From: Macrostomum lignano
Lineage: Eukaryota
Direction of reading: 5' to 3'
NCBI GenBank assembly: GCA_002269645.1
Contig: NIVC01000149.1
Location: 186,001-250,000 of the forward strand
DNA: 64,000 nucleotides
Below, one piece after another: positions 16,524-25,769 of this stretch (the stretch's first letter is position 1; each line of letters starts with the position of its first letter). A program made the translations under genes and the position numbers. Below the pieces are notes generated by a model, which ran no database searches, had not been told where the DNA came from, and saw only the letters and a program-made list of their open reading frames with translations.

Positions 16524-17033
16524 ATGGGAATATTTCCTCAGATCGCCCCGGCAGAGGTCCTCGTGCTCAGCTGTCCGCTCTGCCACTTCGTCACGCACCA
16601 CGTGGACAAGCTGGAGGCGCACTTCACCGCCAAGCACCAGCACCAGCACCTGAACGGCGACGCAGCGCGCGAGCCGGCGGAGGCAGCCGACGCCGACGCT
16701 GACGGCTCCCGGTTCAACCTGCTCCGCTGCTCTGTCTGCGCCAAGGTCAGCAACTCGGCGGCCTTCATGTCCGAGCACTTGGCCATCGCGCATCCTGGCG
16801 AGTCCGGCTCGAGTACGGGTGTTGAGACCGTTTTCCGCGGCCTGCTCAAGCCGACCGCCGTTGCCACCAGCGCCACCGGAGACGCAGCCGGGGCTTCGCC
16901 GTCCCGCCGGTGCCTGTTCTGCCCGTTCCGAGCGGCCAGCGTTGCGGAGCTGAGGCGGCACTTCGAGTACCACGGCCTGCGCAACGTGGCGGGCCTGAGC
17001 TGCGCCGAGGCCGATGGGACCGCCGCACCACTG
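16524..17033 (+). CDS. Coding exon with three dispersed C2H2 zinc fingers; probably the first exon of a transcription factor, possibly the TALE gene at 24213-25769
   Basis: Cx2Cx12Hx4H (CPLC..HFTAKH), Cx2Cx12Hx4H (CSVC..HLAIAH), Cx2Cx12Hx3H (CLFC..HFEYH). High GC3; ATG in GGCATGG context; phase-0 donor CTG|GTGAGT after 17033. Confidence 0.85.
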
Positions 17034-17084
17034 GTGAGTCCGGCATTCCTGTCATTGAGTTCAGCTGCTTTCTGGCCATTCTGG

Positions 17085-17712
17085 TTATAGAATCTAGTCT
17101 CATTCGTCTCATTCTGGTCATAGAAACTAGTCTCATTTACATCTCATTCTGGTCATAGAAACTAGTCTCATTCGTCTCATTCTGATCATAGAATCTAGTC
17201 TCATTTACTCTCATTCTAATCACAGGATCTAGTCTCATTCCTAGTCGGAATTTTCATTTTGACCATAGAATTTTGTGTCATTCTGGACATAGAGCTCACT
17301 CTTATTCTGGTCATAGAGCTCACTCTTATTCTGGTCATAGAGCTCACTCTTATTCTGGTCATAGGGCTCACTCTTATTCTGGTCATAGAGCTCACTCTTA
17401 TTCTGGTCATAGAGCTCACTCTTATTCCGGTCATAGAGCTCACTCTTATTCCGGTCATAGAGCTCACTCTTATTCCGGTCATAGAGCTCACTCTTATTCC
17501 GGTCATAGAGCTCACTCTTATTCCGGTCATAGAACTCACTCTTATTCCGGTCATAGAGCTCACTCTTATTCTGGATATAGCTCACTCTTATTCCGGTCAT
17601 AGAGCTCACTCTTACTCTGGACATAGAGCTCACTCTTATTCCGGTCATAGAACTAACTCTTTTTCTAGTCATAGAACTCACTCTTATTCTGGTCATAGAA
17701 TCTAGCGTCATT
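17085..17712. repeat. 24-bp intronic minisatellite (TTCTGGTCATAGAGCTCACTCTTA) with degenerate flanking copies
   Basis: Homogeneous core with diverged units on both sides. Confidence 0.92.
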
Positions 17713-18611
17713 CTGGTTTTGGCCTCTGTCTGGTCTAAATCGAAAGAAACTAGAAATTAGACATCAACACTTGAGCAGCTCGATAGTGTAGCAAATGACA
17801 CACTGGCTCAGTCAAATTCCTTCACTACGAGCTAAACTCATTAAAAGTTTGCTAATAGGGAAACTCTGGAAAAACAAAATGAAGGCTTGAGTAAGCTTCG
17901 AGACATTGCTGAATTCACTCAAGTTGCTGGCCCGGGGGACACTACGGGGGGCACCGGGACCGCCTGAACTGAAAACCGGAGACTCCCGAGCTGCTCGAAG
18001 GCCTCGGTAAAGAAATATTCCGCCTCTCTCTGTGAGAGGATCGGCATTTCCCAGGAAAATGAAAAAAAGTTTTTTTCTGAATTCATGGCTCGATTGCTTG
18101 GCGAGGCTGCCCCCCCCCCCAGTAGGCTGGCATTGCTACATTTTAATCGAGGGGGGCGGGCGGCGGCTGAACCGCTCTTTGAAGGGGTCGCCAAGCGGGT
18201 TGTGCTTGCTGCTAGCGAACCGAATTCTACAGAGCATTCCTCGGCCCCGTAGACTCGGCGTTCAGAGAGATATTTGCCAAGGCTGGGCTGCTTTGCTACA
18301 TCACGGGGTCCTCTCTCAAAAATGATTAGCATTGCGGGTGCCTGACTGCCTGCCATTTGACTGCCACTACTGCAGAGAAAACACAAGAACCAGTCTAGAA
18401 TCAGGCCTGCGTTTACGAGTTCAAATATAGACATTGTCACTTAGCTCTCCAGTCTCTTATAGCACAGAGGCGCAGGCTCTCAACCAGTCTTTGTTTCACT
18501 TACCAGCGCTTCAAAGGCCCATGCAAGCCTGCATGTCGTTTTCGAATCCGATACAGTCCAGAGTTTTTTCAGTTTACGGTCGTGCTGTTTCTGACCTGGA
18601 TTTCCGACCCA

Positions 18612-18690
18612 CTCTCTCTCTCTCTCTCTCTCTCTCTCTCTCTCTCTCTCTCTCTCTCTCTCTCTCTCTCTCTCTCTCTCTCTCTCTCTC
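18612..18690. repeat. (CT)n microsatellite
   Basis: About 40 CT units. Confidence 0.97.
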
Positions 18691-18984
18691 TGTTTATTCG
18701 ATTCATTCGCGTCAAAAGTTTTTATGACCATGCCATGCAGAGTAGAAATAGTATTGGAATATTAGTTCAGGCTCGAGACAGTCGCTGGCAGGACCTGCCT
18801 GCATGGGGTGGGCCCGCGGCTTCGGCACGAATTTCCGCTGCCTGCTGGCGAGCAGCATGCGGGACTGCCTGTCTGTCTGGCCCGGCTGCAGCCTGTGGGT
18901 GGTCCGCCTTCCACTTCTCCTGCTTTCTGATCTCCTCAGTTGGACTGGCAAAAGTGTCAATGATGCTGACAATTGCTTCGAGCC

Positions 18985-22989: not shown

Positions 22990-23310
22990 GTCTCCTCTCA
23001 GCTCTATTCTCTTCTCACTTCTGTTCTCTTCTCCTCTCTCATCTTTTCTCTTTTCTTTCTTTTCTTCTCTTCTCTATTCTCTTCTCTTCTCTTAACCGTT
23101 CTCTCCACTTTCTTCCATCTACTCTTCTCTTCTCTTCTCTCCTCTTTTCTCTTCTCTTCTTTCTTCTCTCCTCTTGTCTCTCCTCTTGTCTCTTGTCTCT
23201 TCTCTATCTTCTCTCTCTTCTCACCTCTTTTCTATCTTCACCTCTCTCCTCTTTTTCCCTTCTCTTCTCCTCTCCTTTCTTTTCTCCCATCCATCCTCTC
23301 ACCTCCTCTC
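22990..23310. repeat. Polypyrimidine low-complexity tract (TTCTC/CTCTT)
   Basis: Almost purine-free on the + strand. Confidence 0.9.
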
Positions 23311-23734
23311 GACATTAATTAAGAGTAGCCTTGTTGGAAAGCTTTCTGGCTTCCGGATTACTTTTTCGTTGCTGCTTCTGGGCAATTTCACAATTCTGCT
23401 TTTCTACTCGGACCTGTTTTTAAGCGCATCGCAGCCGCACTAAAAGAGAACTTTCCCACCGTCGAGCAGAGCAGAAGCAGCAAGTTGATCTGTTTTCTGT
23501 CAACAAGCAGAACTGGGGCGCGAAAGACCGCCAGGCCTGATGGACAGATGTTTACTGGGGATAACCAGGAGGGCCCTGGGTCAGCTGGATCGGATCAGCT
23601 GCCTCACTTTGCCAGTTTCTCTGTGGTTTGAATGCATCTAGATTTTCTTCGAAACACAGAAGCAAACTGGAATATAGTTAGTATTAGTGTCCGTCTGTCT
23701 CACCGTCCGTCTATCCGTCTGTACGAGTGTATAT

Positions 23735-24180
23735 GCCCGTCTGTCTGCCTGTCTGTCTGTCTGTCTGTCTGTCTGTCTGTCTGTCTGTCTGTCTGTCTGT
23801 CTGTCTGTCTGTCTGTCTGTCTGTCTGTCTGTCTGTCTGTCTGTCTGTCTGTCTGTCTGTCTGTCTGTCTGTCTGTCTGTCTGTCTGTCTGTCTGTGTGT
23901 CTGTCTGTCTGTCTGTGTGTCTGTCTGTCTGTCTGTGTGTCTGTCTGTGTGTCTGTCTGTGTGTCTGTCTGTCTGTCTGTCTGTCTGTCTGTCTGTCTGT
24001 TTGTCTGTCTGTCTGTCTGTGTGTCTGTCTGTCTGTCTGTCTGTCTGTCTGTCTGTCTGTCTGTCTGTCTGTCTGTCTGTCTGTCTGTGTGTCTGTCTGT
24101 CTGTCTGTCTGTCTGTCTGTCTGTCTGTCTGTCTGTCTGTCTGTCCGCCTGTCTGTCTGTCTGTCTGTCTGCCTGTCTGT
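23735..24180. repeat. (TCTG)n microsatellite immediately upstream of the homeobox exon
   Basis: Direct reading; it explains the CLSV N-terminus of ORF 23727..25769. Confidence 0.97.
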
Positions 24181-24212
24181 TGCAAGAATCTCCAACCGAT
24201 TGGCATTCGCAG

Positions 24213-25769
24213 ACGAGCCGCAACGGCCTGGCCGATGAGGCGGCAGCTTCAGAAGACGAGGAAGCAGCCGGCAACGCGTCTGCCGCATCCGCTGCTGCGG
24301 CTGCCAACAAGTCGCCTGAATCCCCGGTGAACTTGGACACAAAGTCGGCACCGGCAAGGCGCAAGCGACCTGCGAACGAGTCGCCCGCCAGGCAGCCGCA
24401 CAAGCAGCAACTGCAGAAACTGCAGCAGCAGCAGCAGCAGCAGAAGCGGCGTCACCTGCCGCAGCCGCTGCCCCTGACGCCCCCGCCGCGGCCAGCGCTG
24501 CCTCTGCAGTCACCGACGCCGATCTCCTCAACTGAGCGCGTCACCAACGGCGGCGGCTCCGCGCCCAACGTCAAGGTCGAGGAGCTCGCCGCGGTCAATT
24601 CCGGTGATGAAGTCGATGAAGAAGACTTGGAGGAGCTGGAGGAGGAGCTCGACGAGGGGCCCGACGCGCTGAACAACCACTCCGGCTCCGAGGACACCAC
24701 CGAGTCGGCCGGCGGCTCCGACGGCTTTCTGTCCTACGCAGCCGCCGCCGCCGCCGCAGCCTCCTACCCGGGCTTCCCGTTCTTCAGCGGCGCCCTCGGC
24801 CCGATGGCGCTGCACCACTCGTTTGCCGCCTTCGCTGGCCAGGCGGCCGCTCCGCTGTTCTTGCCGCCGCCGCCGCCGCCTCCGCCGCCCCCGCAGACTA
24901 CAGGCAGCGCCACCACCACCAGCAGTCTGGAGCTGCTACGCAAGAGTTTCCAGCCGTCCAAGTCCAGCGCATTCCAAACTCCGTCGCATCCCTCCCAGCT
25001 GCCTCAGCCGCTCACGCAGTCGGCCTCATCCTCCTCGTCGGCAACCTCCGTCGTGGCCTCCGGTGAAGTGGCTGACGCAGCAGTCAGGGAAGCCCAGCCG
25101 GCAACAGACAGTCCCGGCTCCGATGCCGGCGTGGAAAATCAGCATCAGGCGCAGCTTCTCCAGCAGCGACATCGTCTGCAGCACGGATCCGGCGTGTCCG
25201 CGGCTGCCGCTTCGCCGTCCTCCGCAGTTCTCGGCTCTTCGCCTTGCAGCGGCGGCGGCGGTGGCGGAGGCGGCAGCGTCGGTTCTCTGCGCCTTGACTG
25301 GTGCTCCATCAAGCGGGGCTCGCGGCCCAACCTGCCCTACTCGGCGCGCAGGAAGCTGTTCCACTGGCTGGCCACGCACCTGCACCAGCCCTACCCGTCC
25401 GAGGAGCAGAAGGAGGCCCTGGCTAGGGACACCCAGCTGACCAAGACCACCGTGAACAACTGGTTCATCAATGCCCGACGCCGCTACGTGAAGCCGCTGC
25501 AGGAAGGCCGCACGGTGCCCGGATTTGATCTCTACCGGGTCGCCGGGCTGCGGTCTCCGGAGCCGCCCTGCTCTGTCGACAGCAGCGGCGGCGTCATCGG
25601 CGTTGGCGGCGTCGGCTCGACTTCGCCCGACTCCGCGGCCATCTCCGTGTCGTCTCCCCCGCCGCCGACGCAGCAGCCGCCGCTGCCAGCACCGCCGCCG
25701 CAACAGCAGCAGCCGCAGCTTCCTACGGTGATGCCGCTGAGCGAGAAGCTGGAACCGAGCACGCCCTGA
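24213..25769 (+). CDS. Terminal exon of a divergent TALE-class homeobox gene (Meis/Prep/TGIF-related homeodomain at about 25314-25500)
   Basis: [61 protein letters not shown] has the TALE loop [10 protein letters not shown] and WFINARRR (I50). Flanked by poly-Q/P/A/E tracts. Acceptor is either TTCGCAG|24213 (phase 0) or TTGCAAG|24187 (phase 1). Confidence 0.93.

Follow-up and report, generated by a model that had tools for sequence, protein, structure and literature searches.

Two exons of a Macrostomum lignano gene very probably join three C2H2-type zinc fingers to a Meis-like TALE homeodomain, in a family found across flatworms

The stretch of DNA analyzed here is 64,000 nucleotides (nt) of the Macrostomum lignano genome (assembly GCA_002269645.1, contig NIVC01000149.1, positions 186,001–250,000, forward strand) and is referred to as the window. 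Positions 16524–25769 very probably constitute one protein-coding gene with two coding exons and a 7.2 kb repeat-filled intron, and the gene product belongs to a flatworm family in which three C2H2 zinc fingers and a TALE homeodomain are present in the same protein. The window DNA as a whole is GC-rich, has the character of eukaryotic DNA with introns, and is dense in tandem repeats. Sequences of the family are already public as ‘hypothetical protein’ or ‘Meis3’ and no new sequence is reported; what appears to be new is the recognition of a conserved flatworm family joining three C2H2 fingers to a Meis-like TALE homeodomain. The gene has the following parts.

16524..17033, plus strand: coding exon 1; 510 nt (170 codons) from the ATG to a phase-0 donor, encoding the N-terminal three-finger module
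17034..24212, plus strand: the single intron; 7,179 nt, GTGAGT...CGCAG, with mini- and microsatellites
24213..25769, plus strand: coding exon 2; 518 codons and a TGA, encoding a low-complexity linker, the homeodomain and a C-terminal tail

Exon 1 begins with the first ATG downstream of an in-frame stop and ends at a phase-0 donor (CACTG/GTGAGT), and the acceptor at 24213 (...TTCGCAG/ACG) is in frame with it. Joining 17033 to 24213 gives a 688-residue open reading frame (ORF) that stops with TGA at 25767–25769. Strong periodicity is seen in the GC content of the three codon positions of exon 1 (0.68/0.53/0.85) and of the first 600 nt of exon 2 (0.72/0.53/0.82), and the intron is flat (0.60/0.57/0.57). 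Because its first 600 nt are periodic, exon 2 is taken as coding right from the acceptor; an in-frame ATG first appears ~200 codons in, and since the exon is open and periodic ahead of this ATG an upstream start is required. An earlier note, made from the sequence alone, had proposed this arrangement, with a 510-nt three-finger exon ending at a phase-0 donor at 17033 and a direct in-frame splice to 24213, and both exon ends and the 688-residue product are borne out. Its alternative, a phase-1 acceptor at 24187, is not the one in the annotated model described below, which uses 24213. The note’s statement that both exons are on the plus strand with no other gene between them also holds: the interval contains only tandem repeats and repeat-derived ORFs in the window, and the public annotation places no gene in it. 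One of these repeats, (GTCT)n at 23739–24180, ends 32 nt ahead of the homeobox-exon acceptor and holds open a spurious ORF upstream of that exon (23727–25769).

The joined translation matches the M. lignano GenBank protein BOX15_Mlig002928g3 (P0121) over the full 688 residues, 687 of which are identical, and the splice of the GenBank model corresponds exactly to the 17033–24213 junction. BOX15_Mlig002928g3 is encoded on a distinct contig of the same assembly, NIVC01000604.1, which is 92–99% identical to the window by block and ~98–99% identical in the non-repeat stretches checked. Exon 1 is the same in both copies (510/510 nt) and exon 2 differs at 5/1557 nt with no indels (four synonymous changes and one Q241R), such that 5 of the 2,064 positions of the whole coding sequence differ, too few for a selection test. 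The intron of the NIVC01000604.1 copy (locus L001, 10001–20844) is ~1.6 kb longer because repeat lengths differ, and there are many such length differences between the copies. Judged from these comparisons, the window most simply contains a second, near-identical copy of the BOX15_Mlig002928g3 gene. The assembly contains 180 Mb of duplicated blocks that are at least 95% identical (PMC5730564), and two slightly different copies, which diverge by ~1–2% outside the coding sequence, fit the duplicated genome of the DV1 line. The suffix ‘g3’ was considered as a label for the third gene of a polycistron, and this was rejected as a shared transcript-name prefix marks transcripts that cluster at ≥95% identity (PMC5730564); the suffix more likely numbers near-identical copies, consistent with the window being another one.

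The product of exon 1 contains three C-x2-C-x12-H-x3-4-H patterns at residues 17–38, 69–90, and 130–150, together with a conserved motif located between the second and third. Residues described as invariant are so in an alignment of 12 finger modules (34% mean column identity), and model confidence is given as the predicted local distance difference test score (pLDDT) of an AlphaFold2 (AF2) model run on that alignment.

16572..16637, plus strand: finger 1; CPLC-x12-H-x4-H, residues 17–38, with C17, C20, H33, and H38 invariant; strand-strand-helix, pLDDT 93–94
16728..16793, plus strand: finger 2; CSVC-x12-H-x4-H, residues 69–90, with C69, C72, H85, and H90 invariant; pLDDT 90–95
16824..16847, plus strand: motif ETVFRGLL between fingers 2 and 3; family consensus TxFxGxL, with F104 and L108 invariant and G106 conserved in ≥90%
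16911..16973, plus strand: finger 3; CLFC-x12-H-x3-H followed by G, residues 130–151, with C130, F132, C133, H146, H150, and G151 invariant; pLDDT 88–89

In a shuffling control using the 170-residue sequence, one pattern is found in 459 of 200,000 shuffles and two or more in none. The alignment has 24 invariant positions, corresponding to all 12 of the Cys/His ligands and 12 other residues that include one hydrophobic residue in each finger and residues of the TxFxGxL motif. The general C2H2 ligand pattern (C-x2-4-C-x12-H-x3-5-H) is thus present and conserved, as are the helices of all three fingers. The AF2 model has a mean pLDDT of 76.7, and each finger (88–95) is modeled as strand-strand-helix, the beta-beta-alpha fold expected around the ligands; the TxFxGxL motif forms a confident beta strand (residues 100–107, pLDDT ~88). 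The fingers are separated by ~30–40 residues in M. lignano and by more than 100 in trematodes including the schistosomes, with linkers that are variable in length, poorly conserved, and contain no short canonical linkers. As the linkers are long and unconserved, the module reads, at the sequence level, as three isolated C2H2-type fingers, divergent and specific to the family, and not as a tandem array.

Exon 2 encodes the homeodomain and the following associated features.

25311..25499, plus strand: TALE homeodomain of 63 residues (KRGSRPNLP..., residues 537–599), matching Pfam Homeobox_KN
25500..25538, plus strand: extension of 13 residues after the homeodomain, kept in the Macrostomum paralogues
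24603..24659, plus strand: acidic block (residues 301–319), a candidate activation region as read from the sequence

The Homeobox_KN match is strong (65.4 bits against a cut-off of 24, E = 4e-18), and PDB sequences rank as MEIS1/2 (62.7 bits), PKNOX1 (53), TGIF (49), and Exd/PBX (44). Alignment to the MEIS1/2 homeodomains of the PDB is ungapped through the three-residue loop (HQPYP and THPYP, respectively), and these matches, with an alignment length of 63 residues, place the domain in the TALE superclass. It is of the MEIS type, with ~60% identity to MEIS, an identical helix 3 (the recognition helix, containing WFINARRR), and both Arg5 and Ile50 retained; Arg5 with Ile50 is the MEIS/TGIF pattern in Table 1 of PMC4901127. 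Family members nonetheless share signatures of their own: SR(T/P)NLP(F/Y), (S/T)(R/K)TTVNNWF, and RRRY(V/L)KPL. At the position of the Macrostomum post-homeodomain extension, the neodermatan orthologues have MQGRLVLQSGVFKTV. The middle of the protein is long and of low complexity, comprising a basic patch, poly-Q, the acidic block, and poly-P, and comparison of this region with the orthologues gives low-complexity similarity only, with no conserved motif found. Trematode orthologues also have an acidic block upstream of the homeodomain, whose likeness to that of M. lignano is compositional only. Basic patches in the 688-residue protein include ARRKRP and KRR. The MEINOX domain (Pfam Meis_PKNOX_N, PF16493), which defines the MEIS class, is absent from the Pfam results for the window protein, the paralogues, and every full-length orthologue, and canonical Meis proteins recovered in the same search with the homeodomain end do carry PF16493.

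Relatives with both modules are recovered only by some searches. A word-index protein search returns matches up to ~1.75 times the query length; the 170-residue finger exon alone gives no match, and the 179-residue homeodomain end returns only proteins of ≤313 residues. Full-length relatives emerged only with the 688-residue query and an exhaustive representative search. An exhaustive HMMER search with exon 1 alone yields 45 proteins, about 25 of which are flatworm proteins that start MG(L/I)(L/F)P and have finger 1 at residue 17. One Macrostomum paralogue, P0122 (A0A1I8FIA9, 481 residues; present in UniRef only and absent from GenBank), begins MGIFPQISPSDVLVLSCPLC... and has three fingers with a homeodomain at the end; it is 47% identical to the window protein in the finger module and 94% in the homeodomain, and the middle is unalignable. 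A third Macrostomum-like paralogue, P0123 (513 residues), has the same domain order as the window protein. Full-length models with three fingers and a TALE homeodomain are also present in Calicophoron daubneyi (1259 residues), Hymenolepis microstoma (953 residues), Opisthorchis felineus (1318 residues), O. viverrini (1378 residues), and Clonorchis sinensis, the last in two independent annotations. The three coding exons of the O. felineus gene span 54 kb; the first encodes the finger module and the last the homeodomain. In Cichlidogyrus casuarinus (JBJKFK010000099.1; locus L002, 10001–20435) the finger and homeobox exons are on one strand, separated by 9 kb, in a locus annotated as three models: Ciccas_001499, Ciccas_001501, and an unnamed 288-residue model between these two.

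Family members occur in every flatworm group sampled (Macrostomorpha, Monogenea, Cestoda, and Trematoda). The architecture is shared by two divergent Macrostomum paralogues and by orthologues in trematodes and cestodes, and it is therefore real and lineage-wide across Rhabditophoran flatworms and not a one-off. This recurrence supports the suggestion of the earlier note that the architecture may be lineage-specific, and together with a transcript-based GenBank model containing the junction (PMC5730564) it supports that note’s central proposal of a single C2H2 plus TALE protein.

Two further proteins were observed in these searches. P0124 (964 residues, MetaClust UPI0007A1CE83), a Macrostomum-like paralogue, has a homeodomain that stops at position 28 of the 40 in the Pfam profile and then runs into a transposase domain of the piggyBac type (DDE_Tnp_1_7, 181 bits); the model is chimeric, or else a copy of the third paralogue contains a transposon insertion. 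P0095 (Tuta absoluta, 278 residues) has an N-terminal TALE homeodomain followed by classical tandem C2H2 fingers that score above Pfam thresholds. Its domain order is the reverse of that in the flatworm family and its fingers are unrelated, and it may be either an annotation fusion or an independent case of C2H2 and TALE pairing.

Several observations weigh against assigning both exons to one gene of such a family. The finger exon is modeled as a separate short gene in Echinococcus, Paragonimus, Schistosoma, and Cichlidogyrus, and because several annotations do so, additional finger-only or homeodomain-only isoforms are possible. Support for the 17033–24213 junction consists of the published description of the annotation pipeline and comparative conservation. 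The fingers fall short of the gathering score of every Pfam C2H2 model (the best is Zf-C2H2_ZNF451_C, 24.6 bits against a cut-off of 30), and Foldseek comparison of the module with the PDB gives no significant whole-module match (E ≥ 0.06). The placement of the family relative to MEIS, PREP, and TGIF is derived from a small neighbour-joining tree of 63 positions with weak deep nodes. With respect to the fingers, the sub-threshold Pfam matches are all to C2H2 families, with zf-C2H2_2 matched in 7 of the 12 members and finger 2 providing the best matches (to ZNF451 and ZNF462 fingers), and the top Foldseek matches are likewise all C2H2 proteins, such as Kaiso and CTCF.

The separate finger models raise the question of whether there are instead two genes, a small one for the zinc fingers and a TALE gene downstream of it, merged by read-through transcripts or by annotation pipelines. 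Finger-only models are available for Echinococcus (221 residues), Paragonimus (303–347 residues), and S. mansoni (Smp_045330, 87 residues), the Cichlidogyrus locus is split in three, and trans-splicing and polycistronic precursors are widespread in M. lignano (PMC5730564). However, the finger-only models of Echinococcus, Paragonimus, Spirometra, Protopolystoma, and Schistosoma run on into the intron, which is typical of truncated predictions, and a separate TALE gene is difficult to reconcile with an exon 2 that needs an upstream start. The M. lignano annotation was built from StringTie/TACO assemblies of RNA-seq data and a mapped de novo transcriptome, with transcripts divided at trans-splice and poly(A) sites that had been mapped by experiment and with TransDecoder used to call ORFs (PMC5730564). 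Donor and acceptor are both phase 0, in-frame joined models from independent pipelines are available for three divergent Macrostomum paralogues as well as for no fewer than five neodermatan species, and the order and strand of the two exons are the same in Macrostomum, in a monogenean, and in a trematode even though the introns range from 7 to 50 kb. Two separate genes are thus very unlikely, and an annotation artefact is similarly improbable because the in-frame pairing recurs in three old paralogues and four flatworm classes. A single gene encoding both modules is the interpretation used below.

The automatic names of family members are ‘Meis3’, ‘myeloid ecotropic viral integration site’, and ‘hypothetical protein’, and finger-only fragments appear under ‘homeobox protein meis3’, ‘Zinc finger C2H2 type’, or Smp_045330. 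The full-length Clonorchis model seems to be the source from which ‘Meis3’ spread. Two H. microstoma genes have the same product name as the orthologue, and published H. microstoma expression values cannot be assigned to it because the name is common to both.

These names invite the interpretation that the family is a diverged flatworm orthologue of Meis (or Prep) in which MEINOX has been swapped for fingers, with no additional family involved. The homeodomain is indeed nearest to MEIS and has an identical recognition helix. However, a canonical Meis homeodomain is also present in the cestodes Dibothriocephalus, Hymenolepis, and Hydatigera, where it is nearly the same as the human one, and the family and canonical Meis therefore coexist in cestodes. 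In a neighbour-joining tree of 25 TALE homeodomains, all aligned at 63 residues and with few non-Meis outgroups, the ten family homeodomains form a separate clade with 99% bootstrap support, outside the Meis, Prep-like, TGIF-like, and fungal sequences. Orthology to Meis or Prep is accordingly unlikely; an origin by ancient duplication of a Meis-class gene is possible.

Among known classes, the closest resemblance is to the MEIS class (Meis/Homothorax/UNC-62 and Prep/Pknox), with which the window protein shares the 63-residue TALE homeodomain, the PYP loop, Arg5, Ile50, and an identical helix 3; it differs in having three N-terminal fingers in place of MEINOX (HM) and in its homeodomain signatures and clade. 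The TGIF class also has a TALE homeodomain with Ile50 and no MEINOX domain, but the homeodomain similarity is lower (49 bits) and TGIF proteins have no fingers and other flanking motifs. The zinc-finger (ZF) class (Zfhx, Zeb, Tshz, Adnp, and Zhx/Homez) likewise has proteins in which a homeodomain is accompanied by C2H2 or C2H2-like fingers at wide spacing, and the fingers described here have weak Pfam similarity to ZFHX3, ADNP_N, and ZHX finger models. However, the window homeodomain is TALE, all of its top PDB sequence matches are TALE proteins, and there is no ZF-class homeodomain among the PDB matches. The likeness to the ZF class is convergent domain shuffling and not membership, because the homeodomain is TALE. 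Animal ZF-class homeobox genes have non-TALE homeodomains according to the review of Burglin & Affolter (PMC4901127), whose account of animal TALE classes and their domain configurations does not mention zinc fingers; the earlier note gave the same background, with non-TALE homeodomains in the ZF class and no fingers in the TALE classes.

The family also resembles the TALE expansions described in spiralians and parasitic flatworms, as a TALE gene outside the six bilaterian families and present in one spiralian phylum as far as sampled. The surveys of these expansions classified homeodomains only, and the family described here is also present in free-living Macrostomum and is not parasite-specific. 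Paps et al. 2015 describe lophotrochozoan/spiralian TALE clades and nowhere mention zinc fingers. Olson et al. 2018, citing Tsai et al. 2013, refer to ‘at least eight unassignable’ TALE genes of tapeworms, and the passages on these genes do not tie zinc fingers to them. The family may be one of the unnamed TALE clades of Olson et al. 2018/Tsai et al. 2013, or one of those of Paps et al. 2015.

The action proposed for the protein draws on established knowledge of the MEIS, PREP, and TGIF homeodomains. The 688-residue product is probably a nuclear transcription factor, as suggested by its basic patches and acidic block. TGIF binds a TGACA-type site, and the homeodomain described here most likely recognizes a TGACA-type core, since its DNA-contacting helix and Arg5 are those of MEIS and Ile50 is kept. 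The MEINOX (HM) domain of Meis and Prep binds PBX/PBC proteins; the finger module occupies the position that MEINOX has in those proteins, and because it lacks this domain the product is probably not a classical Meis-Pbx partner. The fingers probably do not read DNA as a tandem array, given their wide spacing and lack of short canonical linkers, and on balance we favour their acting as separate units for protein interaction or auxiliary nucleic-acid contact, which would give PBX-independent recruitment of partners.

It is possible, if rather doubtful, that the fingers are instead the main DNA-reading part, extending or redirecting the target site of the homeodomain as in bipartite ZF-homeodomain factors. 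The nearest structure and sequence matches are to DNA-binding C2H2 fingers (Kaiso, CTCF, INSM1, and ZNF217) and the helices of all three fingers are conserved, but these matches are weak, the best in a profile search of PDB sequences being INSM1 (E = 0.009). The long and variable linkers are also unlike those of tandem DNA-reading arrays, and the sub-threshold Pfam matches are mostly to isolated fingers of ZNF462, ZNF451, ZFHX3, and ADNP. The broader view to which we incline is that ‘ZF-TALE’ constitutes an unrecognized phylum-wide TALE class, in which a Meis-like homeodomain joined a three-finger module that replaced MEINOX in the flatworm ancestor, giving a PBX-independent factor with a possibly flatworm-specific role in development or stem cells. 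Such a class would have been overlooked since the fingers go unscored in Pfam and the gene is divided in many annotations.

The remainder of the window contains repeats and parts of other genes. At the left end is a satellite array (1–7752) with 235 copies of a 33 bp unit, TTGGATAGAGATCATGAAGGCAGGAATAGATAC, with a 98% match and a very strong GC skew (+0.55), which runs off the end of the window. The tetranucleotide microsatellite (TGTC)n/(GTCT)n is present at 13389–13945, at 23739–24180 within the intron, and at 54318–54716, with 100–140 copies at each location. Remains of a long terminal repeat (LTR) retrotransposon-type element are located at 33828–37786 on the minus strand. Domains recognized in its separate ORFs are an integrase core (rve), RT-RNase H, and reverse transcriptase (RVT_1), together with a Gag-like protein that matches DUF7083; the pol region is interrupted and spread over three or more ORFs. 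A long plus-strand exon at 40785–41756 encodes an RRM domain (Pfam RRM_1, 77 bits) and, after it, a tail very rich in proline, and its product presumably resembles the splicing factor SF3B4. A plus-strand ORF at 53520–54290 has a PTB/PID domain match (31 bits against a cut-off of 20.9) and runs into a (TGTC)n repeat, and is probably an exon of another gene.

The earlier note had allowed that this architecture might already be described. It does exist as predicted proteins in public databases; no paper describing a zinc-finger TALE protein in animals was found by full-text literature searches (including those for Mlig002928 and Smp_045330), whose coverage excluded subscription journals along with most supplementary files. 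The C2H2 and TALE pairing would escape a search by domain architecture because Pfam scores the fingers below threshold.

The relevance of the family is mainly to homeobox evolution, flatworm development, and the correction of helminth gene annotation. Homeobox classification keeps TALE and ZF as separate classes, each with its own companion domains, and the retention of both modules across flatworms indicates that, within a single phylum, a TALE homeodomain has acquired a new partner module by recombination. Several helminth genomes have the gene under the wrong name ‘Meis3’ or divided into two or three models, and homeobox counts and ‘Meis’ expression data in those helminths may mix two different genes. 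The family offers a lineage-restricted transcription factor for studies of regeneration and parasite development, in which M. lignano is amenable to RNA interference and transgenesis.

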